DNA of 64,000 nt from Pelomyxa schiedti (Eukaryota > Protista > Evosea). Below, in pieces: positions 1-45,537 of the stretch; position 1 is the first letter of the stretch; each line of letters begins with the position of its first letter. The stretch lies in the NCBI GenBank assembly GCA_020536535.1, contig JAHLWZ010000838.1, forward strand, positions 1 through 64,000, given 5' to 3'. The position numbers and the translations under genes were made by a program. The notes below the pieces were generated by a model. It was not told the origin of the DNA and did no database searches. It worked only from the letters and a program-made list of their open reading frames with translations.

Positions 1-170
1 ATTCCCTCGCAGCCTCTGCCCCCTGTGCCCAAGAGACCCCTCCCTCCCCCCTCTTCCAAATCCTAAGTCCCCCTGTATTTTCCTCCTACTGCATTCGATT
101 TATTCAATTGACTATTTTCCTTCCGATAGCAGATTTCGTAATAACTATCGTATCATCCACCACCACTACG

Positions 171-3100
171 ATGGCATCACGCAGGCCGCCGCCCCCTGCA
201 CATGCCACCGTCATTTCCGTCGACGACAGCGACGATGACGAATGCGTGGTAATTAGTGGCGGTCGGGCGCCCCCTCCTCCGCCGCAGCAGCACCCGGTGG
301 GCCCCCCTGCCCCTGCCCCTGTCCCAGCTGCGACCTCTCCCTCTTCTACCATCACCATCACCATCACTGCTAGAAGCACAGAGCATGCCCCCGCTCGGTC
401 GGGGTCGCCACCCCCCCTGTGCCCACCTCGTTCCACTGCCCCCAGCCCGCCCATAGGTCCTTCTTTGACCCCCCATCCTGTCTCTACCCCTTCTTCCTCG
501 TCCTCGTCCTCGCCCACCTCGTTCGCTACCTGCACCACCGCCACAACCACAACTACAACAATGTCATCATCAGCATCATCCACTCCAAACAGCGGCAGTG
601 ACATCACCACTACCAACACCAACAACAGTAAAACATCCGCGTGCACAAGCAGTTGCACCAATGCGAGTTCCAATCCAACTGCTTCTGCTACTGCCAATTC
701 CGGTCCTGGTACCAGCCATGACCCAACTCAGCCGACGGCTGTGTCTAACGGGCACACTGATAGTATCAGCAGCAGAACAACTGGGTGTGGTAGTGGTGAC
801 GGTGGTGGAGGCGGCAGCAACGGGGGCACGTCTGGTTACCTAATCAATGGCCACAGGGTGATGTTCCCTTACAAGCCATACCCCGCGCAGATGGCCCTGG
901 TTTCGAATGCTCTATCGGCAATCAAAAACAGCACTCACGCTGCACTGGAATCGCCCACTGGCACCGGTAAGACCTTAGCTCTGCTGTGTGCATCACTGGC
1001 TGCTCAGAAGTCACATAACGAGGCCGTGAGGACGGCTGCAGAGAAAGAGAGACAGCTGAGACTCTCAAAAATTTTAGCCGAAAGGGCTCAACAGAGAGGA
1101 GTTGGGGACTGCGGGACAAATAATGCGGACTTTGGAGTTTCTGATGACGATGACTTTGAACCTAACTTGACAAGCGTGGTTGAAAACGAGACATGGGATA
1201 GGAGGAACATTAAAATTATTTTTAGTACAAGAACACATGGTCAAGTGGCACAAATTGTACGAGAACTGAGGAAAACACCTTACAAACCTCGAATGTGTGA
1301 AAAACCCTTCCCCACTACAGAAATAATTTTTATCAGGTGTGTTCTTGGTTCCAGAAAGATGTATTGCATCAATTCCGCCATTCGGACAAAGCCAAATAAG
1401 AATGCAGAGTGTAAAAGACTCAACGCCAGAGGTGGCTGTCAGTATAAGGCAAGGAGTAAGTTCATATCCCAATCACATATATTTCAACCTGGCGGAGCCA
1501 AAGCCGTATGTGCCAATGTCATACCTGGATTCTCACCCAGTGTAGATTTGGGATGTCGAAGATCTAGTTAAATTTGGGATGGCTAGCGTTGCTTGCCCAT
1601 ATTATGCTGCCAAAGAAATGGCTGAACTCGCTGAATTAGTGGTAAAATAGTTTGTGATAATTGGAGCTTATTCAGTCTAGGTTTGTCCCTACAATTACGT
1701 TCTGGACCCTGGAATACGGGGATCGCTGGGACTTAGCCTCAAAAACACCGTGGTGTGTGCAAGTCACACCCTATGACAGTGACTAACTTATGTAAGGTAA
1801 TTATTGATGAGGCCCACAATATCGAAGATCGCCTGACTGAGGTATCAAGCTGTGAAATGCCCGCTTCGTTACTACAAGAAGCTCGTGATCAACTTGAAAA
1901 ACTTTCTCGTGCAGGCACAACAACCCAGAGAGAAGACGCTCAAAAAGTTTTGCCAGTGGTGGAGTTATTTCAGAAGTTAGCTTCACAATCAGCTGTTTCA
2001 TGTACTCACGAAAATCCAAACGTGGTTTTGCCTGGGAGTGCCCTTCTTTCTCTGCTGTCAGATGGTAAAGTGGATGAAGCTTATGTCACTGACACGTCTA
2101 TGGCATTTGGAAGGCTTTCAATGGACGTTGATGATGTAGAAGATGAAGAATCTATTCAAATCACTCTCTCCTTTGCAGTCCTTACTCTTGTAGAAGAACT
2201 CCTGAAGGTCTGTCATTAATTACTATAAAATGACAGGCGTTAGTTCCTTTCTCTTCAAATTCCAAACAGCGAGTAGGTTCTTACATTCTTCTTCTCAGAG
2301 AATGGAGCTTTTACCAATGACTATAAGCTTGTGTATCAGCAAGAGGGTTCTCGTTCTCAACTGCAACCACAAGAACAGTAATTTACCCTACGATAAAATT
2401 CTCCCCACAATGCCTAAGACAAACCAACAAAGAAATAGTAAATGTAATGTTGTAGGCAAGACTCAATTTCTATGTGGTGCTTGCTGGCAGGAGTTGCCTT
2501 CACTCCAGTTGCGAAAAACTCTCGTTGTGTCATTTTAGCATCAGGCACTTTAGCACCCATCCCACCAATGTGTGCAGAACTGGGACAACTGTTCCCAATA
2601 CAGACAGAACTACCTCATTTTGTAGTCCCACAACAAGTAGTTCCACTCCTTCGCGATATTCGTATAACCCCATAAGGTTTTCATTTGCTCTTTGTGCAGA
2701 TCTATGGGACTGGACCTTGAATTGACGTTTAACAATGTACAAAGAACTGAAATTCTCGATGCCCTTGGTAAAGCGGTTATATCACTAACTGGGGCAGTTC
2801 CTGCTGGAGTTCTTTGTTTCTTCCCCTCATATTCACTCATGAACCGGGTTCTGCAAAGATGGGAAACAACTGGCACGTTGGATCAAATTGCATCCCTAAA
2901 AACTGGGGGAATATTTGTGGAAAATAATGAAGGGGAAGAGTTTGCTGACAGCCTTCGGGCGTACTGTCAGGCAGTTACTGTAGGGTCAGGGTCTATTTTC
3001 TTTGGTGTATGCAGGGGAAAACTCTCTGAGGGATTGGACTTTGCTGATGATACAGCTAGAGCTGTGATTGTTATTGGGTGTGTTCTCTTCAAGAGCTTGC

Positions 3101-3962
3101 CCTCTCATTTACTTTTTTTTTTTTCTGTTATAGGATACCGTATCCCTCAATCAAAGATCTCCGAGTGAATCTTAAGCGCGAGTACAACGACACCAAGCAA
3201 ATCTGTCCCTCCAAATCGCGTCATTGTCCTACAACTGCCATAGCAACACAACGCCTCCCAAGTGAACCGAAGACCCACTTTGCCTCCCAAGCACAAACAC
3301 AGATACAGAAACAATTATCACCTCCCTCATCGTCCTCTCCATCACCCCCAATGTCACAATCCATTCCCGGCACTAATTCTGGTGCTAGCACACAGAAACA
3401 ATCTTGCACTTCCCCCTCAGTTGTACCACCTCCAAACTCCCAGCTCACACAGCAAGCTGCTCCGCTTGTTGCCAAAACCCAAACACAGAGTTCTGCATCA
3501 AATCCCCCAACCTCCAACCTCCCAAATGGCAGTGCCTGGTACCTCCAGCAAGCTCTCCGCGCCGTGAATCAAGCCGTTGGTAGAATTATCCGGCACAAAA
3601 ATGACTATGGAGCAGTGATACTCATCGATGCCCGCTTCCGAGAACCCAGAACTGCCGGTCTTCTCTCCAAGTGGCTGAGGTCCAACATGAAAATCGAACT
3701 TTCAGCTGATTCCGTGGCCCAGCAGCTATCACCATTCTTCCAAGCAGCACACATTGCATACCCTCACCAACAAGTTATGTTACCCAGCAACAACAGCATC
3801 GGCATCAACAATAGCACTACCCTCCCACCACCTCCTCTTGTATCCACTCAGAATCAAGCCCACACACCTTGTGCATCACTGTTATCCAATTCTCGCAACA
3901 GACGTGGGCCAGTGCACAAGAGGCCACGCCGATACCTGACACTTTCCAAGACGCATGAATAA
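171..3962 (+). CDS. BRIP1: FANCJ/BRIP1-like Fe-S DEAH helicase (XPD/RTEL1 family), multi-exon
   Basis: FPYKPYPAQ Q-motif, Walker A ESPTGTGKT, STRTHGQ, Cys-rich Fe-S region, spliced VCPYNYVLD and IIDEAHNIED, SGTLAP, VCRGKLSEGLDF, and QALRAVNQAVGRIIRHKNDYGAVILIDARF (motif VI). First ATG at 171; S/T-rich N-terminus. Confidence 0.9.
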
Positions 3963-9275: not shown

Positions 9276-12200
9276 TTAGAACTTGGGTTTTTTCTTGGAT
9301 TCAACAAGCTTCACAGTTCGGTTGAATACGGGCTTGCCGGGCTTGCTATCGAGGTCGGTGCAGAAGAATCCCACTCTCTCAAATTGGAAGCAATCCCACG
9401 GCTTGGCGGCTATGGATGAGGGTTAAGGCAAAGAGGGAATTCAATCTGAAGGGGAAAAAAACCTTTGAGTGATTCATCGATGTAGGCATTGGGGATCACG
9501 ATAAGGGAGTTGGGATTTATATCGTTTTCCCAATCTTTAAGTGCATCGGGCTGTTTCGACTTGAAAAGAACATCGTACAATCTGACTTCAGCTGTACAAG
9601 GTTCCTAAAAACCGTGGTGAGAGACAAGGAAACTGCTATAACTAAAAAAAAACCTCATTTGGACGGGGCTGAGCAACCCAGTGAATGTGACCTTTAGGTG
9701 TTCTAGCGTGGGTGGGGTCATACGTTGCTGTCAAGGACACTATTTTGCCTGTTGTGTCACGTACAACACCCGTGCACGTGATATTGTGCTTAGAGTGTCT
9801 CAGACCAACTTCTTTTCCAACAGCCAACCCCCAGAAGCTCTTTAAAGTGGTTACTAACAGGAAAATGAAGCAGGAAGTGAACCTTGACATCTTTCTCAGA
9901 GAAATCGGCCCTCTCTATGTAAATCACCCTTGAGAAGGGAACCTCATTTCGGCCCCTAGATTCATCACTTGGGTGGTTTGGTCTGCTGACCATTTCCACT
10001 CTATCAGCCTCCCAGTTTACAATTTCCACACGAAGAGGGTCCAAAACCGCCATCCCACGTAGGCACCGATTTTCCATATCCTGGCGGCAGTGAGTTTCTA
10101 CAGATAGGTTAGAGGAAAAGAAAAACGGGACCAGCGTACCCAAGAAAGTGTAGTGAATCCACACGGTGTCATTGGTTGTCACGCCAACAGCATCGCAAAA
10201 ATTATTAATTGCTGTTGGACTGTAACCTTTTCTTCTGAGACCATTTATGGTAGGAAGACGGGGATCATCCCAGCCGTTCACCAGTTCTATGAGCAGTTGG
10301 ACTTGGGGAAAAAAAAAGGAAAAATACGCACTCTTGGTCACCAGAATGAGTAATTTGCGCTTTGACATCACTGTGTGGGTGATGTTAAGACGGCTGAACT
10401 CCCACACGACGGGTTTATACATTTCTAGGGCATCCAGCAGCCAGAAATATGACTCCCTCCTTGGCTATTGATGTGTAAAAAGACTAAAAAGACGAAGAAA
10501 CAGTTGAACTCACTCACCAAAAATTCCAAAGTACACATGGAGTGTGTAATGTCTTCGAGCGAATCATTAATGCAGTGGGTGTAATCGTAGCTTGGATAAA
10601 CACAGTACTTGTTGCCAGTCATAGGGTGAGGCACGTACTTGATCCTGTAGGCAATCAAGTCTCTCATACATGGATTTGGGGAGTCCACAGTCATTTTCAT
10701 TCTCAAAGTTGCTTCTCCCTCCTTAAACCTGCATTGGGATTTAAAAAAAAGCTGGAAAATAATGCTTAGAGTGTACCTGCCCTGGCGCATTTGCTCAAAC
10801 AGGTCCAAGCTTTCCTGAATGGGTCTATCTCTCCAAGGACTTGCAATGCATTTCAGCCGGGACTCCTTGATTTCTGCTGGAGATTGGTGGCAGACATAAG
10901 CCTTCCCTCTCTTAAAGGTATTAGACGAGTTTTTCTTTTTTTCTTCTTTAACCTTAATGAGGGCAATAGCACACTCGATGAGTTGATCAAAGTAACTCGA
11001 GGCATATGTTATTGCACAGGGTGTATGCCCCAGCCATTTGACATTCTAAAAAGATTGTTACCTTATGAGCAACGACGGGAGATTGTACGTCAAGTATCGA
11101 CTCTATGTAAGTGTGATTTTCCTTCTCGGGGTTAGTGTCGTCGTATCTGAGGAAGCACTTGCCGCCATATTTTTCGGCGGTTCCGAAGTTGAGGAACATT
11201 GATTTGGCATGCCCTATGTGAAGGAAACCCTGACAAACTTGTTACTATTAAACGAGGAGAGTAAGGTTACATTTGGCTCTGGAGGAAAACGAGTAACAAC
11301 TTTTCCACCTGTGCGAGCCAAATGTGCTGCGAGTATGGCCGGATTAAGTTGCTTGTTGTCAGATGGAAGAGACAACCCGTGATGCATAGGTTCTGGGGGT
11401 CTTGGTCCTGGGGGAGTAGGAGAAGTCTCAGTTACGGTTGCTGAGGTGGTTGCAGTTGCAGTTGCAGTTGGGGCTGCGGTTGTGGTCACTACTGATGGAG
11501 ATTCTTTTGTAGGCGCTTTATTTTTACCCTTTCCTGCCGCTATATCACTTTCTGTCTTTGGACCCAAAATGGCCAATAGTTGAGCGTCTACTTCATCTTT
11601 CACCGTTTTTCCATCTGCCCACTTAAGTTGCCCCGCTCTAAAAAAAAAAGGTAAGCACCCCATCACAGAGAACCCAGTGCAACTGTGGACACACCTCACA
11701 TTTCTGAGGAATGCAAAAACATCAAACTGGTATCTTTTTGTAGTAACCTCTTCACGAACCGCGGCGAAAGCACGAGCAACTTCAGATTTTACCACAGCAG
11801 GACTGACATCAACGCCAATACCACACTCTCGTTCCAGTACGGTGGCATCAAATCTCTCCCCCAAAATGCCACCACCAACAATGCACCCACTTGGGTCAAT
11901 GCGTGTGAGAAGCTTGATTGCAGCATCCAGTTGTGGCTGCAAGTTCATTTTGTGGTCGGCAATGTACCTGGCAATAAGAGGGCGATGAATATGAGTATGT
12001 GCAGGCAATTTGGCAGAAGCAAGGTTGTATAGTAATACACCAAGGGACTTGTCACAGCCTCCAGTGAGCTTAAGCTAGGACAAATTAGATAGGGAAACAA
12101 AAAGGGGAAAATAGAGACCCACCTCAGTTAGAAGGCCAAACAAACACTCCGTCAACTCTGGATTCCTTACTGTTTCGCGTGCCTTGGCAGGGACAATGCC

Positions 12201-22126: not shown

Positions 22127-24251
22127 TTATGTCTTGGTATCAGCAGGGGGAGGGCAGCAGGCATTATTTGTGATTTTCTCAGCTCGCTCAACTGCTTCTC
22201 GCACGCGGGAGGTGAATAGATCTCTAAGAGCGCTGGATCTGAATGCATCTGTGTTTGTTGGTGGTGGTGATGTGGCTCCACAAAGACGGGCTTGTTTTTC
22301 CTGCTTCTTGAATGTGACATACAAATCTAGTTGCTGTAGGACTCTCTGTTTCGTGGGCAGGCAGTTTGGATCCGCGTCAAGTGGCGATTCTTGCTGTTGC
22401 GGCTCATCAGGCAGACTATTCAATATAGACTCAAGATCTACGATGAGCGGGGACTTGATACAAAACTGGTTCCATGTTTGTAACCACCAGCTTAACAGAG
22501 GTTCAACTGTTTGCCAGCCACCATCGCTCACGATTACGTTGCGGACGAATTCAAACAGCTTGTTTTCAAACTCTCTGGTCGGGATTGCATACTCGTCAAC
22601 TGTGCTCGAAGTTGGAGACTTTGTTTCTTGCAGTTTCTTTGGTTTGGTAAGGAAATCATTCCAGAGAAAGGTATATAACCTGAGAAACTGCCAGGTAGCG
22701 CTTGAGCAATGTAAATACCCCTGACGTGAGTCCTGGAATGCCGCCTCGAGAGAGAAGCTGCAATGAATTGTGAGGATACGTTGACAGGAGAACTTTACAT
22801 CATGCAGCGGTTTGTAAATTGAAGGCAAAACTTCTTTGTAGAGTTTAATCATTTCCGCACTTCCGATGAGTTCGATGAATTGTATCTATTTAAAAAATTA
22901 CTGGAACTCCATTCTTGCCTTAACTTACCTTATCAGCCAGTCTTGCCTCAAGAAGAAGGAATTTGTATAGCTGAAGCACTTTGTCATGTTCCAGAGAATC
23001 AATTTCGGTGGTGGCAAGGCTAGGTGGGATCCGCGAGTCACACAGCACCATCTTGAGGTGTGTTTTCATCTCTTCTTCTTTGGGTAATGGCCCATCACTT
23101 GGAGTATTTAGGTCATACGGAAATTGGCTTGCAACACTGTCATACAACAGAGAAAACCACTGGGACATTTTCTCTACAATAGGTATGCCAAAACTTTTGG
23201 AGATATCAATTCTGAGTGAAGCCACTTCGCTTTCAGTCCGTCGCACTTCGGTACTTCCTTCTATAAGTCTCTGCATCACGCTCCTTGTTCCCAATGGTCT
23301 AGATAAGAGCAATGAAACTACTCCTTTCACGATCAATGAAGGTGACGCCAGAGCAGTCGCACCAACAATTGCAGATTTAGGAAGCATCTTCATAGTATGA
23401 GAGAACTTGGCTACTTTGGCTGGCGTTGTCATTTCGCGAAGAGTTGCTTGGCGAATAAGAGAGCAAAAGGATGTCAGACTGTTCTCATACACTGGAGGGA
23501 GAGAAGATGCAGAGGGGCAATGTTGCCAAGTGGCGCGGAAGGTCTCAGGACTGATTGTGGTAAGATGCATTGATAAGCATATGACAGCATTCAGGAAATC
23601 GGTGCGCGATTCTTGGTGAACCTGCGAGTGAGAGGAACCTTGTGTGACGGCTGTATTCTGGCACCTTGTAGACTCCCCACCGAGATCCTGATACCTAGCC
23701 ATATCTCCATCGCGTTCTTTCTTCGTGCGCACAAATAAGTCAAGCAAAGCACTGCAAGTTGCATTTGTGGCCTGTTGATCTCGTTTGGTTGCCCGCTTTG
23801 CGTGAGCGTTGATGCGAGGTAGAGCAGTCAAAAATAAATCCAGGCTGGAGGATGCCTCGGAATGCTGCGGGCTGGCATGCAGAATGTGGGATGGTGATGA
23901 TGCACTATGCAAATGAGAACGGTGCGTTTCAGCATAGCTACCTGCAAACAAAGGCACTTTCGAAGAGAGGTGCTTGTGCAAGAATGACAACAACACGGTT
24001 TGGCTATCCACGAAGTGCACCAGTTCAGCAACCCTTTCCGGCTGGCACAAACACGATCTATCCCGCATGGCAACAGAACTGCCGCCACCGCCACCTACTG
24101 AGGAAGTCGTACTGCTTACCGCTGCCGATGCCGGCTGCGTCGCACAACACATCCCCAGCTCATGCGCGATTGCGTTCTCGACAAGCAATTTCTTCAAGTA
24201 TGTCTCTTGCTCGTAACTCAGACTCGCACCACCGCCACACGTATCGGCCAT
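22127..24251 (-). CDS. Lec1/YPR097W-like protein (PXB-like N-terminus + DUF3818-like domain)
   Basis: LSYEQETYLKKLLVENAIAHEL resembles the PX-associated N-terminus. LPPVY...SPSLIVKGVVSLLLSRPLGTRSVMQRL resembles DUF3818. One clear intron near 22.9 kb. Confidence 0.6.
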
Positions 24252-24361
24252 CTCCACACAGAACGCACACAACCACGACTGTTAACTACTTCATTATGCT
24301 CCACACACGGCGTCGTTACTCAGCACGCCACCTCAAACATGTTTTTCGAAACCCAAAAGGA

Positions 24362-31924: not shown

Positions 31925-33463
31925 TCATGGCGAAACAAGGTCGCAGGTAGAAGCAGTGTTGAGTTCACTGAATTGTACTCCCCAGTTGGTGACTGTGGTG
32001 CCATTGAGTTGCAGGAGTTGGCCTCTGAGTAGTGGTGCTATGGTGGTTCCTTGTTTGTAGGCTTCGAGTGCAAGCCTCGATTTGACATAATAAGCAGCTG
32101 CCCGGTTATTTGTCAGATATTCAACGGCATCTTGGCCTGAAGAAATGGCAGTGTGAGTTTTTGACTCGTTATATTAGATGGGAAAAAACCTACCTTGAAC
32201 TGGGGGAAGTGCCGCTCTCGAGTCTCTCCACGACTTGTAACCATCAATAACAGACTGCGGAATAGTGGAATGTAGGCGTGACACAAGTTCCCAAAACCAA
32301 AGAATAATTTCATAAACAAACCCTGGGGGGAATGTGCTCTCGATCGCGTGCATGAATTCCAGCTGAGAAGAACAGGCCCCGAATCTTTTTTTTTTTTTTT
32401 GTTTGTGAGTCAGAGGAAATTGCAGTTGGGTGGCAATATACTCCTTTATCCACATATTCTCTGCCGATGTAGGTCCAATTGTGGAATATTGCATGCAATG
32501 AACCATTTCATGGAGTGGAGAGTAGCTGCAAGAAAATAGAAAATCTCGCAAGATTCTTCCTTGAGGTCTGTTGAGGAAAAAGGATAGAAAAATGTGAACT
32601 ACTGCTTGTATACCCGGTCTTGGTGCAGTTATTTCCCAGATCTGTTTATGATCCTCATTGAACAAATTGGCGTCGGGGAACAATAAAATTCTGGTCCCAG
32701 CAGCTTGAAATGTTATTTCATCTGCCGGCATCCCAATTGGAAAGATTGGTGAAGCTTCAAGCTTGTTTTGTTTTGTTTTGATTGGTTCGTTTTTATTCCT
32801 AGTTGCCAGCAGTATTTCATTTCATTCAAAATAGACATAGTGATAATTGGCAATAGCTGTATCGATTTCATTTCGTACCCTGGGATCTAGAATTCCCCTT
32901 GCCACAATCTCAGGAAGCTCCCTTTTTATGAATTCTGTTCCGGCAGCCAAAACCCTCCCCACCCACTCCACATAGTTCATGCTACCCACGACTGAGATTC
33001 TTCCCTCCAGCCACCTCCTCAAGCACCCCACTCTCCTCCCGCACAACCACGCCGCGCCCCTCCCCGTGCCCATGGCCATCCCCGCGCATCCCCGGCAGCA
33101 GCGGCAGCCCCCCCCGGCCTCGCTCTCCCCCCACCCACACGCCCCCTCGCCCTCGCCCTCGCCCTGGCCCAAACACCCACCTTTCAGTCCAAACACCCCT
33201 GGGGCGACTCCTTCTAGGGTCAGGCCCAGGTGCTCGAGGAGGGCGTCCACTCGGCCCCTGGCCACTTCCATGAACCTACGCTCGAGGGCACAGGCACCCC
33301 CGTCGCCGTTCAGGTCCCACAAGCACGGAGTGCCGCATATTCCTACGACTATAGCAGCCTGCGTCGACGAGGGGTTAACCTCGTGGAACCTGTCCACCAA
33401 CGTCAACAACGTAGAGGCATCCACGAATGTCAAATTGCTCTGCGTGGCCGCCGACATTGTCAT
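31925..33463 (-). CDS. Hypothetical protein with gluzincin metallopeptidase motif
   Basis: HEMVH (32498-32512) followed by exactly 18 residues then E (WIKE). Exons join in frame. Confidence 0.55.
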
Positions 33464-33635
33464 CAACACCCAACCGCCTCGGCACACGGAATTCGACACA
33501 AGAAACCAAAATGCCAATTGGCTTTACCGTTTGAGAAAAACCATCAACAACCACCGTTCCGAACACCAAAAACTGAACAAACAAAAAAGAAAAGCACACG
33601 AAGGCAAGGAGTCAGAAGAGAAGGAAAAAAAAAGC

Positions 33636-36600
33636 ATGGCGACCTCCGAGTAGTACGTGCCTCCATCCCATAATTCCCGATGTATAAATACGAGGCACTC
33701 ATGCACTCAAACTGACCCACTCAATATACTTCAACACAACAAACAACAGTATCACTGTGTTGATATCACGAGAGGGGGAGAGACACACCACGCCGGTTGG
33801 AATCGGCACGCACGACACCCTCTCGTCACTGGCCCTTTTGGTCCAGGACCGTTTCAATGTGCCCATGGCCTCGCAGCGCCTCGTGTTCCACGGCAAAGTA
33901 CTCCGCAGCGACGACGACGTGACCAACATGTCCGACGTCGGCATCGCAAACGAATCTGTAGTATATCTCATGAAGCCCAGGACGCCCCCTCCTCCTTCTA
34001 GTGCCACTACAAGCACTACTACAACCACTTCGAGCAGCCATGATGAATCGTCACATGCCGCCAGTCGTAATTCTGCGAGGGAAAAGGAGGGCGATGATGA
34101 TGATGACGACGACGACGGAGCTGATGACGCCGATGGGGAAGGGGAAGAGGTGCAAAGCGGGTTGAGATCGAGGAAGGGAAAATCAATGTTTGACGATTCG
34201 GGTGATAATGATAACGATGTTGGCCAAGGACTACTGGAATACGAGAGGGAGGAAGAGTTTGATGATGTACAGAGAGACCGGGTTCCACATGGTGATGATG
34301 TGGAATTTGAAATTTACATCAAATGTTCTGGGTGAGTTAGAGAGTGCTCCCCGCTTACCACCACCTTTTTTTTCCCTTTCTTTTGAGCAGTGGGGTGATA
34401 CGTACTCTCTGACTAACATTTTTTGTTTCCTTAAGGTGTGCCACTTTCCCACTTCAAGTTTCCTCTTCAACAACAGTAGCATCACTTAAGCGGGAAATTC
34501 AAGATAACGTGAAGGCTCATCCATCAGAGATGACTATGGTTTTATTATTTATATGTTGTCTTCCTAACAGGAAAAAAGATGTATGCCGGTAAACCACTTT
34601 CTGACCTATCAAGCCTATCCCAGTACAATGTACCCATTTTCTATGTCGCCATCCTCTAAAAACTTTTCTTCTCCACAAGGTCTCGAAGGAAAGTGTTATT
34701 TCTGTTGTAGTTAAACAAGCGACTTCGATAACCTTGATTGTTAAATTTTCAACTGGAAAGGTACCTTATACACTAAAACAATCCGTTTTGAATGTGAATT
34801 TTCAGGTTGTGTCAATAGCTATGGAGAGTACAGATACAGTGGAAGACTTGAAACTAAGACTGTCGGACACACCTGGAGTTGAAATGCCTTCACAAGGGAT
34901 TCGGCTATTTTTCAAGCAAACGGAACTTGTAGAGGATACTAACACCCTTAGTCAGTATGGGTTGTCTAATGAGTGTGTTATTAATGTAGTCTTCCGCAAA
35001 ACTCCAAGTATTTTTCTGGCTTCAAATGGTAAAAACAGCTCTTAGTATTACGTTTTCTGAGATATATTTTTAAGATACTTGGTGGAGCTTACTGCTTCAA
35101 TCTGCTTGGGGTGCCCTTCGCGCGTTGATCACTCCTGTACTGGTAAATGTTATGTAACATGTCTACATCTATTTAACACTCCGTTGTAGAATACGTTGTA
35201 TCAAATAGTTAGATTTTTTGGACGATTCCTGCACCCTCTGGTTCAAATTAAGCGCTTGTTCATTAGTTTTGTTTGGCGTCTCGGGTCTCATCTAAAACTT
35301 TGTGTGTAACGTATTCGAGAATCTTGCAGGCATCTTCTAATGCAATTTCAGGTTTTTCGTGGCTTCAGAACACTGTCAGGCCCATTATTCACTTGTATGA
35401 GTCCACTTTTTCCTCTCATGAAGTTAACCCTACCTAGGCTGGCAACTATCTACCATACAACATGGGACAGGATTGTATCTGTTGCTAGACTTGTGCAAGG
35501 TTAATCCTCCCTATCCTTAAACCTTCTAATCTAGTTCAGTTGTTCTACGGTCAGTATTCAATAAAGTATCAACACCGTGTCGCTTCCTATACAGGATAGT
35601 CTCTTCAGTTGTCAGGTGGATATGGAATAACCCTGTGTCCTTTGTAAAAACAAGTGTGGACCCTTAATAACCTTGACTTTTTCCCTAACAAAATATACAA
35701 ATCACCAGAACTCGGACAGGTAATGACCCTGTGCACTACGGTAATGAAACGTGGTTGGAATCTCCTAACGGCAATTCTTTCATCACTTCAACGTGTGACT
35801 TCGTCAATTTTTGCCATAGTACGACGAAAGGTATCTGATGTAGCCCATACACTGTGGGGATATACTACATCCCTGGCTTCAAATGTTTGGCGGTTCACCA
35901 CATCTGTTGCATCGAATGCTTGGCGACTTACAACTTCAGTTTCTTCTGCTGTCTGGAGGCACACTTCAGCTGTTGCCTCTACTCTGTGGCGTTATACCAG
36001 TTCTACGGCATCCACCTTGTGGCGATATTCATCGACCGTAGCGTCAGCGCTATGGAACAAAGTAACCACTGTCTCTTCTGCGGTCTGGCGTTGCACTTCT
36101 TCGACATTGCGACACGTATCCTCAGCTGCCAAATGGATGTGGGACCGTAGTGTTGGTGTCTGCTCTGTGTTGAGACGTTACTCGTCCCGCTGTGTTTCTG
36201 CTCTATGGCATCAAACCTGCCTAGGGGCTTCTAGACTAAAACGACTTGTTCACAATACAACGCACGCGGTTATCAATTTCATCTCACCGATATTCTCTTC
36301 TATTTGGACTTTCTCCAAGTCTGTCGTGCATACAATCTGGGATCACACTTGTTCCATCTTAACCAGAGTCTGGCGAAGTTTCTCTTCCGTATGCTGCACA
36401 GTAGGTAGGGCAGCGGAATCTCTTTGGAAAAGAGTCTTGTACCCCATTATATCTTCAGTCTGCCGAAATTCCTATAATCTTTTGTACCGACTTTTATCCT
36501 TTGTATTTACTAGTGTGTACCACAGTAGTTAACGTTAAGTGACACTTGACAGAAACTAAAAATATTATTCACGCAGTATTTTCACATATAAGTCGCGTCG

Positions 36601-38031
36601 CTTCCAAACTCTGGACCTGGGTGACCACATTCATTCGCTACTGCCACTCTCGAATTTCTGCATTTTCACGCTTTGTTTGGAACTTTACTTGGCCCCGTTT
36701 CTGTACCGTACTCTCTCGGTCCTATGCTCTTGTCAAACGTATCGTTCTTGGAATCCGTGATGCCCTTCGATACTTATTCCGAAGTTGCTTCTCTAACCCC
36801 TTCTAATTTTACTCACAATCTCAGAAACTGGTGATGCGATGTATTATATTTATCAGATGCTCCGTCCCCATGTTGCCTCTTTGATGAATGGCTGTGGCAG
36901 GGTGTTGAGATGGGTAGGAACAAAACTGAGAGCGGGTTTAAGAGCTGTAGATAGAGTGGTTGATGCAATTTGCAGAGCAGGTTGCTAATTGCTTTTCTCA
37001 AAGGGGTTAATGTCTTGTAGGATTTGACTTTTTCCTGGCACACCTGTGGCCTTATATCAGGCCAATACTGCTTGGGGTTCGCAGTGGTTTAAGATTTTTC
37101 TTCAGAACAATTTTCCGAGTCCTGACTTTTGTCTTCCGCGTCATTCTGTACCTTTCTATGACAAATGTCCTTCTCTAAGACAGGCAAAAACAGGTTCCCA
37201 TACAGGTTTTTCTGCGAGAGAATCTCACCATACCGTGGGTACCACAGACAAGGGTACACATTGGATATTCGGCCAAGCGTAAGGCGAAATTACACTCCCC
37301 ACGGAGTTTTGTATGTTTTGTGACTGCAAATGGCAGCTCACGAACCCTTTCCCAGATATGAGATGCAGGATCAAACAGAATATGGCATCTTCATTAGGAA
37401 CTCCAGTAATCCCCCTTCAGTCTGCCATCTGAAAGTTGATGGCTCTCGCGTTGGATCCTTCTTATTGCCTCCAAATGCCGGTGCTTATTCTACCACTCCC
37501 TCTCAATTAGTCTAATTTCCTCCTTTTAGCTTGTATCATCACACATCCTTCAGAGGATATGAGGCGGTTTAAATTTGTTGCCCCAGAAGAGCACGCTCCC
37601 ACAGGCCCAGTACTTGCAGCAGATGGCGGTGTAATTGCTGCCACGGATCCCAATATCGGCTGTATAGAAGGTACCCGAACTCTTACACTGAGGTTGCCCT
37701 CACATAAACAAAAAACCTAGCCACCTTTGAACCCACTGGTGACACACACCGCCCATCCCGAAGAGCCCAGCGTAGAGCAAGGAAGGCTCTCTCCTCATTC
37801 AGCTCACCTTTTGCCGCATCCTCAGCAGCCTCAGTAGCGGATGATGAATGGGAATACAACCAACCGGCACAGGAACAACAGCAACAGCAAGCTGCACCCG
37901 CGGCCGCGTTCTTGGCTGGAGAAACTGTACTTGGATCGTTAAGTGACCAGCGGTTCACTGGTATTCCGGCACCTGCAACTGATACCACCAGACAGGTCGT
38001 TCTTTCTGTCAGGCTTGTGACACGTGTTTAG
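33636..38031 (+). CDS. Multidomain protein: 3 ubiquitin-like domains, long Trp-rich amphipathic helical region, C-terminal beta domain
   Basis: UBL1 (QRLVFHGKVL), acidic linker, UBL2 (SSTTVASLKREI...GKPLSD), UBL3 (DTVEDLKLRL...RLFFKQTELVED), then W-periodic exons, then YGIFIRN...KVDGSRVGSF...GETVLGSLSDQRF...VVLSVRLV. The join near 37.1-37.2 kb is the least certain. Confidence 0.65.
35855..36118 (+). repeat. Eight coding 33-bp/11-aa repeats, consensus W-R-x-T-[TS]-x-V-A-S-x-[VL]
   Basis: WGYTTSLASNV WRFTTSVASNA WRLTTSVSSAV WRHTSAVASTL WRYTSSTASTL WRYSSTVASAL WNKVTTVSSAV WRCTSSTLRHV. Confidence 0.9.
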
Positions 38032-38096
38032 TGTGGCACGCCTGGTTATGTGTGTTTTTTCTAAAAAGAAGTGGAAGATAAGTATTTGGGTTTTTT

Positions 38097-41000
38097 TTAG
38101 TTTGCTAGACGCGCACGGAATGTACGGAGTTGCATAGGGTTGAGAGTAATAATGCGGTCTTGAAGGAGGATTGAGCGGGAGGATGTGGGGGATGGTGATT
38201 GTGTTGATTTGGTGGTGGTTGCTGCTGTATTCCAAGATAACCGCTTCACACTGGATAGGGCTTGATTCCCAGTGATTTGTGTTTCAGTGAGCTGGACTAG
38301 GGAAGGGTTAGAAAGCCAATGATTTCGTTGTTTGGGTACCAAAAACAAGGTCGGTGAAAAGGGTATCCAAGTTGATGGAGACAGTCTTGGATAATTCACT
38401 ATCTTCATTCAAGCCGAAAGTGTTTTGCAGTCTAAAAACCACTTCACCAGAATCTGGAATAAGGTAAGCAAATTGAACAGCAGCACAAATTCTTTACCAA
38501 GGGGAAGAATTCCTTCAATGAGTGCATTGTCTGGGAGGGAGTACCTCAATGGTGTGAAGGAAGTTTTGTACTTGGACACAAACTGGTGAATAGTTAATTG
38601 GGGATAGAAAACCGGAAGGGGATTACCGTTGATGGATTGGCTTCCAGACCAAACATGGCAGTGAATGGATTGTTAATTATATGTTGAAGTCTACGCATTT
38701 GTCTTGCAGAAACAGAAGTATCATTTATAACAAGATAGTGAGTTGCCCTAATAACTGTATTTTCGTTCAGTGCTTCATCAACACCGCGCGAGTCGTCCTT
38801 GAGTAATCGTCTATGTAACATTATTTCAAGCTCTCCACTGCTAAGGCTGCTTGTTCCTTCGGCCCGATCAACGATAACACTGAGAGTTGTTGGACGTGGG
38901 AAGTGGCAAGAGCTACAGACGTTAATTGGGTCGTAGCGTCCTTGATTGCTGCAGCAGATACGATCGGGTAATAATTACCTGCCACAGGCTAGGAGACTTA
39001 GTGGGGTTCGAAATTGGGGACACAATTGGTACCTCTTCTAAAGTTAAGTCCCATGTTGGCCTATAGTCCAAAATCCTTTCCTAGGAAACTAGAAGAATTG
39101 TTGATAATAAAGACTTGGGAGCTACCTGCATTTCCATTCCGTTAGAGTCGGTATAGAATTTATTGCTTGTATCAAGATTCGTAGTATACTTTGTAATGAC
39201 TTCTTTACCATCCAAGTCAGCAATTTCAATTGGGCCCACAGTAGAAAACACTATACAATGAGTCGTCAATTGTTTTAAAAGGTTGAGTTTCATAGAACCT
39301 TCTACATGAGGTTGACCAGTATAAATGCGGTAGGTTTGCTGGATAAAGGTATTGAAAGTCTAAAAAGAATCTTCTGTCATTTCTTTGAAAAATGAACAAA
39401 GGGATTCGACCTGTCTCACTTCCGTAACCAGAGAACCGGATACTATTGAAACAGTTGCAGTCGATGTAAAAATATTGGGAGTCTGCGCTGTTGGGCGGAA
39501 AATGTATGCTCCAGAGGCCTGAGAGGATTCCAGGTTCCCGATACTGCCCTTGTACCACATGAAATTTTGTGCCACCTTAAAAGAGGAAGTAAAAGTAATA
39601 TAATTGAACCACGTTAGAAACCTGTGTGATGACCTGTGTCTTCATATTACGAACTTGTTTCAGCATACCAGAAGTGCCATCAAAAGTGAGTTCTATGTAT
39701 TCATTTTTCACAACATAATCAGCCTGTTTTTCCTTAGTTGGCTACGTGGTAGGTGGCGTTTTTTCTCAAACCTCTGGAGATAGAGTGCGAATTGGTGTAT
39801 ATTCAGCAGTTGAAACAGAGCTACTCAAGAAGTAGGTAGCATAACCCATTGGAGGTACTGTGACCTTGAACACCACTGTGTACTTGTTTGAATCATCCGT
39901 GAGAACATCTTTACGTGGTCACCAAAAAGGGAACAGGATATTAGGATTACCGCTTGGCTCTGTTAGGAATACTTGTGCTGAGACACTCTGAAGGGAGGAA
40001 TCCAGAACTAGTACCCTTAAGACATTGAACAACATAGACTAAATCCTACCTTGGACAACTGAAGATGGGACAGGGAATCTAACATATTCTGTGCGTGACC
40101 AAGACAGGGTATTATAAAGTACAACTGGTATGAAGTTTCCGGCTGAAGTGGTTTTTGATGTTGCAGGACAGACACTGACATTTAGCAACGGGCAGAAACT
40201 CAGATACGTTGTTTGCCCTGTGGCATTTGCCACCATAATGCCAGCAATGTTTGAAATGGCGTCATATGCAGCATTCGTCCCTATATCAAGACGGAGACAA
40301 TAGTCATCGCAAACGTGCTAGGGAGCGAATGAGCCCATTAAAGCAAAGAACCAAGTAACCAACCTGCTTTTCAGTTCCCGTAATGCCATCACTAAATTAT
40401 TCGTTTAAAGAAGGAACAAAGGGAAAGAAAAAAATACTGGTGTAAGCCAACTCCAAGGGCCTAGACATATTGAAAAGTAACTAAGTCAGAAATAAACAAG
40501 TTTTGCCAGAATTATACCGCTTCCAGGGTTTTTATATTCTTCATAGCAGTAGTAACCTGTGAGGAAGCCCAAGGTGCCAAGGTATATAAATTGTGGGCTG
40601 TGTGCAGAATTGATGTTCTTGATTGCGTGAAACCCTGTTTATGTTAAAAGTTACGCAGTTAGGAAAAATGAAGCTACCTTTTGTGCTGGTCGACTTGTAA
40701 AGTACCCAGTCCAGAAAGAGTGCGCACTATCTAAATGAAAAGAGAAGTAAACTAGTAATATAAAAACAAGAGACAAACCAGCGTAGGGGAAGAAGTCGTC
40801 AGTCTTGACTGACCAAGTAGTTCCATAAGTATTCTGATAAGCATTGACAGCCTTGGGAAATGAGGGGTGTTGACAAGCTTAATTACAGTACCTCAACATA
40901 ACGGGAGGGAGTGGAATAAAAGATATTGATATTAGGGTACCGACTAGGAAAGCCCTTCGTTACTAGACAAGGAATGACAGGATAATAGGAAAAAATACCT

Positions 41001-43239: not shown

Positions 43240-45537
43240 ATGTCGAACGAGAAGGCAGGGGGGCCGGAGACGGCGAAGGACGAAGATCTACCAGATATAA
43301 GTGGTGTTGACTGCAGTGACAGTGACGCCACCGACGATGACGACGGCTACGTTGTAGCCGACGACAGCAGCGAAAACAGCGAGGAGCCCCTCACGCAAGC
43401 CCCAGTTCGTCACACAACCCCGCAACTTGCTCGCAGCACGCAACTGGCTCGTATCCTCAAAAACGCTCAAATCGCCAAATCCAAGGCACCCAAAGACGAA
43501 GACGGCGATGGCGTCGTTGTTGTTGGCAGCGGCGGCGGCGGCGGCGACGGCTCGGCGGCGGCTAGTGCCGCAAAAACTTCATCGATGCCAGCAGACCCCT
43601 CGCTGCAGACATCTGCAGAAAGTGCAAAGGCGTCATCTGTGACCGATGACGGTGATGGAGTCGGAAGCGGCGGAGATGGAGATGGAAGTGGAGGTGGAGA
43701 CGCAGGAGGCAGCAGTGGGAGCGAAACGGCTTCTAGTGAGAATGGTGATGGCGAAGAGAATACCGACGGCGCCAACAGCGACGGGGACGACGGCGGGAGT
43801 GGGACTGAGAGTGGGAAGAGCACGGGTGATGGTCACGAGTTCGATAGTGACCAAGAATTTGTGCCACCGTCATCGAATGTAGGCAAACAGACAGTACCGA
43901 TCGCTGTTGAGCTGCACCATCCCCGCGTCCTTAAAAAAGTTCGAAGCAACTACACTGCAGAAGAGGATGTGGCAATTTTACAGTTCGTCCACGACAATCC
44001 AAGTTATGGTGTTCAAGGCAATGCAATTTGGCGATTGCTGGCAGGAAGGGTACCATTCACCTTTTAGACATCCTCTCTCCCCTTAGTTGATTTTTTTTTT
44101 AGTCTGCACAAGGTACCAAACCACACCTGGCAAAGTTTGAGGACTCACTACCGTTACATTAGCAAGAAGTCTATTCCGCAATTGCAAAATGCGGTGCAGA
44201 AGGCGAAGGGAAAGACCAAGCCTACACTTGTCTTGGATAAATCCCCTGTTGCCCAACAGTCCCCAGCTGTTACCAAAAGTGACACTGGTTCATTAACTAC
44301 AACAAGTACTACCACTACAGTAGGCAAGAAAATCAGTAATGCTGTTCCCGACATCACTGACGACTTGGATATGTTTGATTTTGGGAATGACGCACCACCA
44401 GCCAAAAACAGTTCCTTGCCCCGTCCTTCTGGTGGCCACCGTACAGCACCTGTGACTTTTCAAAGCACTGACCAACCAGCTCCAACATCCCCTCAACCAA
44501 TTCAGTGGGTACAAAGAAAACGCTCATTAGGTCTAAAACTCAGCACACCCCAGTCTTTAAATCAAAGCTCACTGGATCAAAGTGCAAACCTGCAGCAAAC
44601 CAATCCCATCGATGTTGCCCAGATTGTTCAGGCTACAACAGGTCAAAGTGAGCTTTCAGACTCCATGCGAAAATCACAAGAAAATGCAATGGAACTTCCA
44701 CCAACACACACAAAATCAAAAGTGCAACCGTCCACAGTTGAAGGTGGGAAGCAAGCAACCAAATCCACAGCGGTTTGTTCGAATCAAAAGAAACAGCCTG
44801 CAGCCGCCATTCCACAATCAGAAAGCTCTGGAACAATCCTTGTGGGACAAGATATTCCTATGCAACAAGTTCATCACATTCAAAGAACTGAGGTGCCGAA
44901 AGCACCGCAATCACTACCACAAGCTCAGCACACACATAAACAAGTACACAGACCACAAGAAAGTCTTCCACAAATACAACAGCCACTTCACCAGTCACCA
45001 GAACTAACAGATGTCAGCAAAACATCTGAATTTGACATAATCAAACCGGAACCAAGTGATGACCCTACCGACACATGTGCGTTGCATGAAGCAGCACATA
45101 GAAATGCCGGCCACATACAGCAGGCAATAAAGAGATCACGTACTTCAATCGATGAGGGTGCTATTGAGCAAGTCGTTGTTGCTGCGCAGACATCTGCTGA
45201 TCGCGCAGCTAGTGGTCTAGTTATAACCGGGTCTATTGAGGCTGCCATAAAACTACTTTCTGGGCAAGGTGTGTTTCTTTCAAAAGATTCCAATTATTTA
45301 CTGATACCTAAAAGACCCTGAAGTGAAGCTCTGGACCCAAGCAGAAAATGTACAAAATTTTTTGATCATAAAATCGGTGGCAAGTGTCAAATCTAATCTA
45401 CAATACAGAAGGCACTTATTCACCAAGACTATACTCTATGTAAGACTATTATGTCTGAGTGTGGATTCCAGGCTTTCTGCAGTCGATTAGAATTCCTTGG
45501 ACTCAAAGCAGATGACTACCCTTTCCTACAGAGCTAG
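43240..45537 (+). CDS. TERF2IP: RAP1/TERF2IP-like telomere protein (single Myb + RCT-like C-terminus)
   Basis: Myb segment RSNYTAEEDVAILQFV...VQGNAIWRLL...HTWQSLRTHY. C-terminus GSIEAAIKLL..LWTQAEN..CGFQAFCSRLEFL resembles the RCT domain. Confidence 0.7.

Follow-up and report, generated by a model that had tools for sequence, protein, structure and literature searches.

A nuclear gene of the amoeba Pelomyxa schiedti joins three ubiquitin-like domains to a giant predicted amphipathic helix with an 11-residue period

What kind of protein carries ubiquitin-like domains in front of hundreds of residues that return to the same pattern every 11 positions, a spacing shared by lipid-binding helices and by the tape-measure proteins of phage tails? 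The question is raised by a gene on the forward strand of contig JAHLWZ010000838.1 (assembly GCA_020536535.1) of the anaerobic amoeba Pelomyxa schiedti, studied here within the first 64,000 nucleotides of that contig (the window), which are eukaryotic and rich in short introns. The limits given for it in the original prediction, made from the DNA letters alone, were exact (33636-38031, with the ATG at 33636 and the stop codon at 38029-38031). Its product is already deposited publicly as KAH3755936.1 (P0001; 1155 amino acids, aa), in a singleton cluster at NCBI and under the misleading automatic name “ubiquitin 4 [Pelomyxa schiedti]”. The protein is best grouped with the giant 11-mer amphipathic helices, among which its fusion to ubiquitin folds and to an orphan end domain is without precedent.

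Contigs of four single-cell RNA runs (one study, one sample) were placed on 33300-38400, and a gene model was built from three-frame translation and the RNA joints, the remaining junctions being chosen by listing in-frame GT..AG introns (Table 1). This independently built 19-exon model encodes 1154 aa and is identical to KAH3755936.1 from residue 7 onward, the sole difference lying in the first splice donor, which gives either MATSD or MATSEY as the protein start. Ten of the 18 introns were confirmed by RNA, all of them GT..AG and 40-50 bases long. A single contig of 1238 nt, covering about 36457-37981, was spliced seven times (the GT..AG cut of three of these introns sits 1-2 bases rightward), and a second contig, covering 35240-35589, contributed three more introns; both display the in-frame splicing that had been proposed. 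When the exons are joined at the RNA joints, the sequence stays open in one frame from 35648 as far as the stop codon. Spliced contig and continuous frame together place the C-terminal domain, with its three exons, in one coding transcript with the repeat exons, and the break near 37.1 kb that might have divided them into separate genes is not there, as the longer contig crosses the region in frame. A separate gene starting at ATG 37330 was considered and rejected, this codon lying inside an RNA-confirmed intron.

The contig at 35240-35589 is open in one frame only, and that frame has no Met, so that a start codon is needed upstream, in ubiquitin-like domain 3 or earlier. RNA contigs are absent over 33300-35240 and 35590-36281 and the first donor site is ambiguous, two points in favour of a gene-model artefact, either two merged genes or a decaying pseudogene. 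Such an artefact is nevertheless scarcely credible, as the frame is open through all 18 junctions, the 10 confirmed ones included, ubiquitin-like domain 3 is only 46 bases away from the next exon, no Met occurs between residues 305 and 491 of KAH3755936.1 (186 residues) though RNA-confirmed coding exons fall there, the 11-residue (hendecad) register carries on across exon joints, and selection on the repeat pattern is evident. The short gap, the lack of Met and the continued register tie the ubiquitin-like exons to the rest. The locus is one expressed, intron-rich nuclear gene. The order of its parts (three ubiquitin-like domains, helical region, C-terminal domain) and their union in a single gene had been predicted correctly, while the helical part amounts to about 606 aa (residues 351-956) and not to about 500.

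The predicted introns that were chosen measure 40-55 bases, with GTAAA, GTACC, GTGTG or GTTTT as donors; two others, close to the 5' end, measure about 100 bases. Across the gene (33650-37720) introns are very short and uniform, and only these two, both in the ubiquitin-like 5' part, are longer.

The helical region (residues 351-956) consists largely of Ser (11.6%), Arg (10.7%), Val (10.7%), Leu (10.4%) and Thr (8.4%), with 5% Trp, 0.3% Glu and a net charge of +70. Half of the residues are hydrophobic, large aromatics make up about 11-14%, Ser+Thr 20%, Arg+Lys 13.7% and Gly 3%. The Fourier spectrum of hydrophobicity showed one sharp peak at 98.0 degrees (11/3 = 98.18), with a power of 61 on the Eisenberg scale; in 300 shuffles the strongest peak averaged 8.6 and never exceeded 14.2. 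The peak was 4-7 times the shuffle maximum, and with Kyte-Doolittle values it reached 484 against 62 for the next angle. The local phase (44-residue windows) drifts within about 150 degrees along all 600 residues. In a fixed 11-column register, columns 1, 4, 7, 8 and 11 are 62-79% hydrophobic, whereas columns 2, 6 and 10, where Arg, Ser and Thr are found, are 25-30% hydrophobic; the hydrophobic columns form one contiguous arc of about 165 degrees with Trp at its edge. The helical-wheel check suggested in the original prediction gave a hydrophobic moment of 0.39 (Fauchere-Pliska, 33-residue windows) compared to 0.16 in shuffled sequences, for a mean hydrophobicity of 0.60. With this moment and the 98.0-degree peak, the 11-residue period is indeed of the same kind as that of 3-11 lipid-binding helices.

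The Trp period itself had been described as strict. It is exact in one run of eight and one of three Trp residues (Table 1), while elsewhere the hydrophobic pattern is periodic and Trp is not; overall, Trp pairs at lags of 11, 22 and 33 were more frequent than in shuffles (25 compared to 4.2 ± 1.9). Comparison of the eight core units gave an identity of 29% for third codon positions, roughly as expected at random, but of 61% for the first two positions. As synonymous sites are saturated and the amino-acid pattern is kept, the repeats are old and their pattern has been maintained by selection. Tandem Repeats Finder detected no tandem array at the DNA level, because the units are only 50% identical.

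Fourteen prolines occur in the region, the longest proline-free stretch being of 199 residues. No segment of transmembrane type was found, as the best 19-residue window holds three Arg and no uncharged hydrophobic run of transmembrane quality is present, and a transmembrane protein was thus rejected; a signal peptide is absent from the protein. A single-sequence AlphaFold model of the region was almost wholly helical, with helices of up to 105 residues, at low confidence (predicted local distance difference test score, pLDDT, 52; predicted template-modelling score, pTM, 0.25) and with no confident packing.

A word search of proteins of 635-2021 aa, with the helix as query, gave just two matches, the protein itself and a phage tape-measure protein of 1390 aa (E 1.2e-3). 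In PHROGs the helix matched 24 families, nearly all of tail tape-measure proteins, with E-values down to 1.5e-18, and a tblastn search matched 192 phage records, always within tape-measure genes, at about 20% identity and with 80-90% of the query covered. The C-terminal halves of three matched tape-measure proteins had a period of 98-99 degrees and 3-7% Trp, and were Gly/Ala-rich and near neutral. The likeness to phage tape-measure repeats that had been remarked on is thereby substantiated. A published search pattern for such proteins, [FW]-x10 repeated seven times (PMC3271669), occurs in KAH3755936.1 as two overlapping matches, at residues 535 and 546. The siphophage Trp/Phe repeat (PMC3271669) and the present helix agree in their 98-99 degree period, in which columns are hydrophobic and in the aromatic marker at every 11th residue. 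They differ in that the present repeat belongs to a eukaryotic gene with 18 spliceosomal introns, located among eukaryotic genes and outside any tail module, that the protein has neither the N-terminal nor the lytic domains of tape-measure proteins (and no Pfam tape-measure domain), and that its helix is Arg/Ser/Thr-rich whereas tape-measure proteins are Gly/Ala-rich. Within two of the tape-measure genes (L001, 629-4477, and L002, 1163-3799), only the C-terminal half had the sharp 98-99 degree period, the N-terminal half being heptad-like at about 102-104 degrees; such tape-measure proteins seem to switch coiled-coil register along their length.

As these matches could reflect either common descent or a common pattern, the real helix and shuffled versions of it were compared by phmmer against three tape-measure proteins (TMPs). 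The real helix scored 49.5 bits against Genki TMP, 36.0 against P0002 and 16.9 against Lactococcus TMP, and the fully shuffled helix about -3, -4 and -6 bits, respectively. A block-wise shuffle, in which the residues of each of the 11 columns were kept within blocks of 33-66 residues, scored 41-49, 34-39 and 20-21 bits. Column shuffles over the whole region and row shuffles were rejected as unfair controls because the register drifts along the region, and the block-wise shuffles were used instead. Since these score like the real sequence against the three proteins, the tape-measure matches appear fully explained by the local positional pattern. At the level of sequence, the helix is the same kind of sequence as the tape-measure repeat, and the similarity gives no sign of common descent; the claim that homology to tape-measure proteins is proven was consequently rejected.

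That the helix nevertheless descends from a phage or prophage tape-measure gene, taken up for example from a bacterial endosymbiont, then furnished with introns and fused to a polyubiquitin remnant, would be an explanation of its origin and not of its function. It could draw on the matches in the word search, PHROGs and phage records, on the bacteria that the host carries in its cytosol and vesicles (PMC10579272), and on the mostly viral language-model neighbours of the C-terminal domain, which are a lead only. This origin is very improbable, given that local 11-column shuffles match the tape-measure proteins as well as the real helix does, that the protein matches no Pfam tape-measure domain, that its composition differs from theirs, that the C-terminal domain has no match in PHROGs or viral contigs, and that the helical region is spread over ten exons with ordinary host introns.

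The tape-measure likeness also bears on function. The main rival to a lipid-bound helix takes the region for a straight rod of hendecad coiled coil, homo-oligomeric like the tape-measure protein in a phage tail. Such a rod would not bind lipid and would serve as a spacer, ruler or tether of up to about 90 nm, carrying the ubiquitin folds on one end and the beta domain on the opposite one. The tape-measure families and phage records matched, the period and Trp content shared with the tape-measure C-terminal halves, the published [FW]-x10 pattern (PMC3271669) and the very long predicted helices all speak for such a rod. However, a net charge of +70 with almost no acidic residues would allow no inter-chain salt bridges and would make parallel chains repel each other strongly, the region is broken by its prolines, and its polar face is rich in Ser, Thr and Arg, not Gly/Ala-rich and near neutral as in tape-measure proteins. 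Moreover, the similarity appears to carry no information beyond the pattern, since block-wise column shuffles reproduce it fully. The rod is therefore rather unlikely, though a serious contender.

The N-terminal part was matched by Pfam PF00240 in three stretches of KAH3755936.1 (133.4 bits compared to a cut-off of 25.4; E 2.4e-39), and each domain was also matched exon by exon. In a PDB sequence search the nearest solved structures to this part were ubiquitin itself, domain 1 being more divergent than domains 2 and 3 (mono-ubiquitin match at about 1e-4). All three domains lack the terminal GG, as had been predicted (ends KPRTP, KQATS and RKTPS), so that the ubiquitin folds are built in and neither releasable nor conjugatable. 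Domains 2 and 3 aligned with linear di-ubiquitin without a gap across the junction (E 3e-25), KQATS-I replacing RLRGG-M. As in linear (M1-linked) di-ubiquitin, these two units stand head to tail with no spacer, domain 1 being set off by a linker of 106 residues. By their sequence, domains 2 and 3 look like a fossilised piece of a polyubiquitin gene; the units here belong to a 1155-residue protein, and RLRGG has been replaced by KQATS and RKTPS. Domain 2 retains Lys at the positions of K6, K27, K48 and K63 of ubiquitin, whereas Leu8 is replaced by Ser in domains 2 and 3, and Ile44 by Met in one of them and Phe in the other.

Amphipathic helices of the giant 11-mer kind are uncommon, and the textbook example is perilipin 4. 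With perilipin 4, apolipoprotein A-I, alpha-synuclein and CCT-alpha (PMC5889406) the present region shares an uninterrupted 11-residue amphipathic periodicity over hundreds of residues and many Ser/Thr. Its hydrophobic moment equals that of apolipoprotein A-I (0.39; PMC5889406, Table 1) and falls within the range of the lipid-binding helices in that paper. The Pfam families Perilipin, Apolipoprotein and Synuclein gave no match even at E up to 10, and membership of any of them was rejected. Several features set the protein apart from perilipin 4: a purely cationic +70 compared to about +1 per 33-mer, a much higher hydrophobicity (mean 0.60) with 14% Trp/Phe/Tyr, degenerate repeats instead of near-identical 33-mers, and a fusion to ubiquitin-like domains in place of a PAT domain or four-helix bundle. 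It also differs from lipid-packing sensor helices of the ALPS type, in which a bulky hydrophobic face is paired with a polar face of Ser, Thr and Gly that has very few charges, by its content of Arg+Lys and its low Gly.

The reading proposed here is that the 600-residue region would be a giant cationic 3-11 amphipathic helix that lies flat in a lipid-surface interface, most probably that of an anionic membrane. Fully extended, it could cover up to about 90 nm of surface, and it would hold the three non-conjugatable ubiquitin folds and the end domain there, the fixed ubiquitin folds acting as a permanent ubiquitin-type signal for ubiquitin-binding proteins. This reading is favoured because the wide hydrophobic face is aromatic and carries Trp where the interface would be, because the other face is made of Ser, Thr and Arg with no acidic residues for coiled-coil salt bridges, and because prolines punctuate the helix as they do in apolipoproteins. 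That such an in-plane helix covers a lipid surface or an anionic membrane and presents permanent ubiquitin folds on it is the explanation to which we incline, with a confidence slightly short of even. Lipid droplets, the surface suggested in the original prediction, are not indicated in particular: the helix of perilipin 4 is described as weakly hydrophobic, a weakness linked to its droplet selectivity (PMC5889406), and the present helix is far more hydrophobic and cationic. By this analogy, droplet specificity is unlikely, and anionic bilayers in general are the likelier target. That the ubiquitin-like domains would recruit proteasome or p97 binders, as the original prediction also proposed, is conjecture.

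The proposed arrangement would also resemble that of HERP/Usa1 and TMUB1, membrane-held ubiquitin-like adaptors with transmembrane or hairpin anchors and one ubiquitin-like domain, insofar as a ubiquitin-like domain would be docked at a membrane. The present protein differs from them by its three ubiquitin-like domains, the lack of a transmembrane segment and a proposed in-plane helix of 600 residues.

Several points weigh against the lipid-surface coat. The same pattern of columns 1, 4, 7, 8 and 11 with Trp/Phe markers is found in phage tape-measure proteins, which are not described as lipid coats. With a mean hydrophobicity of 0.60 over 600 residues, a free monomer would be prone to aggregation, so that self-association into bundles or coiled coils is equally plausible. 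The fold models are of low confidence, and the ubiquitin-like exons lie outside the RNA coverage, their link to the helix exons having no direct RNA. The high positive charge (+70, with 10.7% Arg) could in addition serve to bind another polyanion such as RNA, DNA, polyphosphate or a cell-wall polymer, and the low-confidence model leaves room for tertiary packing of the region as a soluble helical solenoid or bundle. Either is improbable: a polyanion would not bury the one continuous face formed by half of the residues, no known nucleic-acid-binding family was matched in Pfam, a coherent period of exactly 11/3 over 600 residues is unexpected for helical hairpins, and the fold model gives a solenoid no support.

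Bacteria and an archaeon live free in the cytosol of P. schiedti, and its vesicles contain a clostridial bacterium (PMC10579272). With such symbionts, a surface-marking role for a membrane-binding, ubiquitin-displaying protein is conceivable, if speculative. A more specific version would make the protein a ready-made ubiquitin coat, whose Trp/Arg-rich cationic helix, tape-measure-like in pattern and antimicrobial-peptide-like in composition, would bind the anionic envelopes of cytosolic prokaryotes or their vesicles, plant an uncleavable mimic of linear di-ubiquitin on them and recruit autophagy or sorting receptors with no need of a ligase; the helix might even stem from a captured phage tape-measure gene. 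We regard this version as quite improbable.

As a coherent helix of 600 residues that is strongly hydrophobic, Trp-marked and purely cationic, the protein is a natural counter-example to the equally coherent perilipin 4, and would allow a direct test of how the surface coated by such a helix depends on hydrophobicity, charge and length. With its fused, non-cleavable di-ubiquitin, the protein hints at a way of marking a surface with a ubiquitin signal independently of any ligase, which is of interest in an amoeba with bacteria and archaea in its cytosol. In addition, the presence in a eukaryotic cytosolic protein of a pattern long taken as a tape-measure hallmark is a warning for profile-based annotation and possibly a clue to the physical role of the pattern. 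The name “ubiquitin 4” conceals that 70% of KAH3755936.1 is not ubiquitin-like, and an annotation based on PHROGs would name the helical region a tail tape-measure protein; both names would mislead.

The C-terminal domain contains a low-complexity insert that is basic, then Ala/Ser-rich and finally acidic and Gln-rich, and the motifs quoted for the domain in the original prediction are present in the protein. The kinship with prokaryotic, giant-virus or fungal proteins that had been suggested for it found no sequence or fold match. No relative was detected in Pfam (E up to 10), PHROGs, PDB sequences or the word search, nor in scans of viral and metagenome contigs, and an exhaustive phmmer search with the last exon against 1.84 billion representatives gave one match, the protein itself. 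Language-model neighbours, which echo the suggested viral kinship but serve as a lead only, were mostly viral, unnamed clusters (about 200-284 aa) at 0.94, and a cluster at 0.83 in which 10% of members carry DUF7918 (PF25534). The single-sequence fold of the domain was unreliable (pLDDT 42), and searches with this model in the protein atlas and BFVD yielded template-modelling scores below 0.3, treated as meaningless.

For the protein as a whole, no relatives were found in databases of 1.8-5.8 billion proteins. The largest repeat exon had no word-search match among proteins of 147-467 aa and nothing above chance in the protein atlas, and the helix and C-terminal parts gave nothing meaningful in Pfam up to E 10. 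Neither a description of the protein nor another protein with the same domain order was found.

Table 1. Features of the studied gene and of its surroundings in the window, with positions counted from the first base of the window.
Feature	Position	Strand	Evidence or remarks
Whole coding region	33636..38031	+	19 exons, 18 short GT..AG introns, 1154-1155 aa; = KAH3755936.1
Ubiquitin-like domain 1 (residues 7-83)	33751..33981	+	PF00240 E 5e-9 on exon; PDB ubiquitin matches; ends KPRTP
Ser/Thr-rich, then Asp/Glu-rich linker (residues 84-189)	33982..34299	+	net charge -23, 106 residues
Ubiquitin-like domain 2 (residues 190-265)	34300..34721	+	split by three predicted introns; ends KQATS (RLRGG in ubiquitin)
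Ubiquitin-like domain 3 (residues 269-344)	34731..35003	+	Pfam E 4e-12; polyubiquitin spacing after domain 2; ends RKTPS
Giant 11/3 (hendecad) amphipathic helical region (residues 351-956)	35022..37287	+	606 aa, ten exons; periodicity, phase, hydrophobic moment; predicted helix
Three RNA-confirmed introns, first part of helical region	35302-35351, 35395-35437, 35498-35537	+	second contig, 35240-35589
Core of eight 11-residue units, Trp at position 1	35855..36118	+	consensus W-R-x-T-T/S-S-V-A-S-x-L; Trp spacing, codon comparison
Second run, three Trp spaced by 11 (model positions 684, 695, 706)	36305..36373	+	Trp spacing
Seven RNA-confirmed introns (span 36513..37718)	36513-36552, 36784-36824, 36979-37018, 37148-37193, 37311-37355, 37480-37528, 37669-37718	+	1238-nt contig
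Intron holding ATG 37330	37311..37355	+	RNA joint 37310/37356 in 1238-nt contig; frame kept
C-terminal orphan domain (residues 957-1155)	37288..38028	+	beta-rich first ~100 aa, low-complexity insert, conserved-looking tail
DEAD_2/Helicase_C_2 (XPD/RTEL-type helicase) open reading frame	108-3962	+	domain matches
Glutaminyl-tRNA synthetase N-terminal domains, open reading frame	11214-12008	-	domain matches
DUF3818 (PX-associated) open reading frame	22920-24272	-	domain matches
Convergent neighbour, GH38 alpha-mannosidase-like gene	38072-39575	-	weak Pfam Glyco_hydro_38C match at 39360-39575
Rap1-type Myb domain open reading frame	43240-44067	+	domain match
Three WW domains, open reading frame	55722-56516	-	domain matches

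Within the window, tblastn found no paralogue of the studied gene. The surrounding open reading frames encode, among others, an XPD-type helicase, a glutaminyl-tRNA synthetase, a PX-associated domain, WW domains and a GH38 mannosidase (Table 1). The last of these, convergent with the studied gene, has a poly(A) site at about 38072 in the RNA contigs, about 40 bases from the stop codon of the studied gene, as well as a CT..AC intron (GT..AG on the minus strand) at 38297-38339. In its 3' untranslated region, one of the RNA contigs has an additional T after 38090 and is 6 bases short at 38195, differences that probably represent allelic or strain variation among the sequenced cells.

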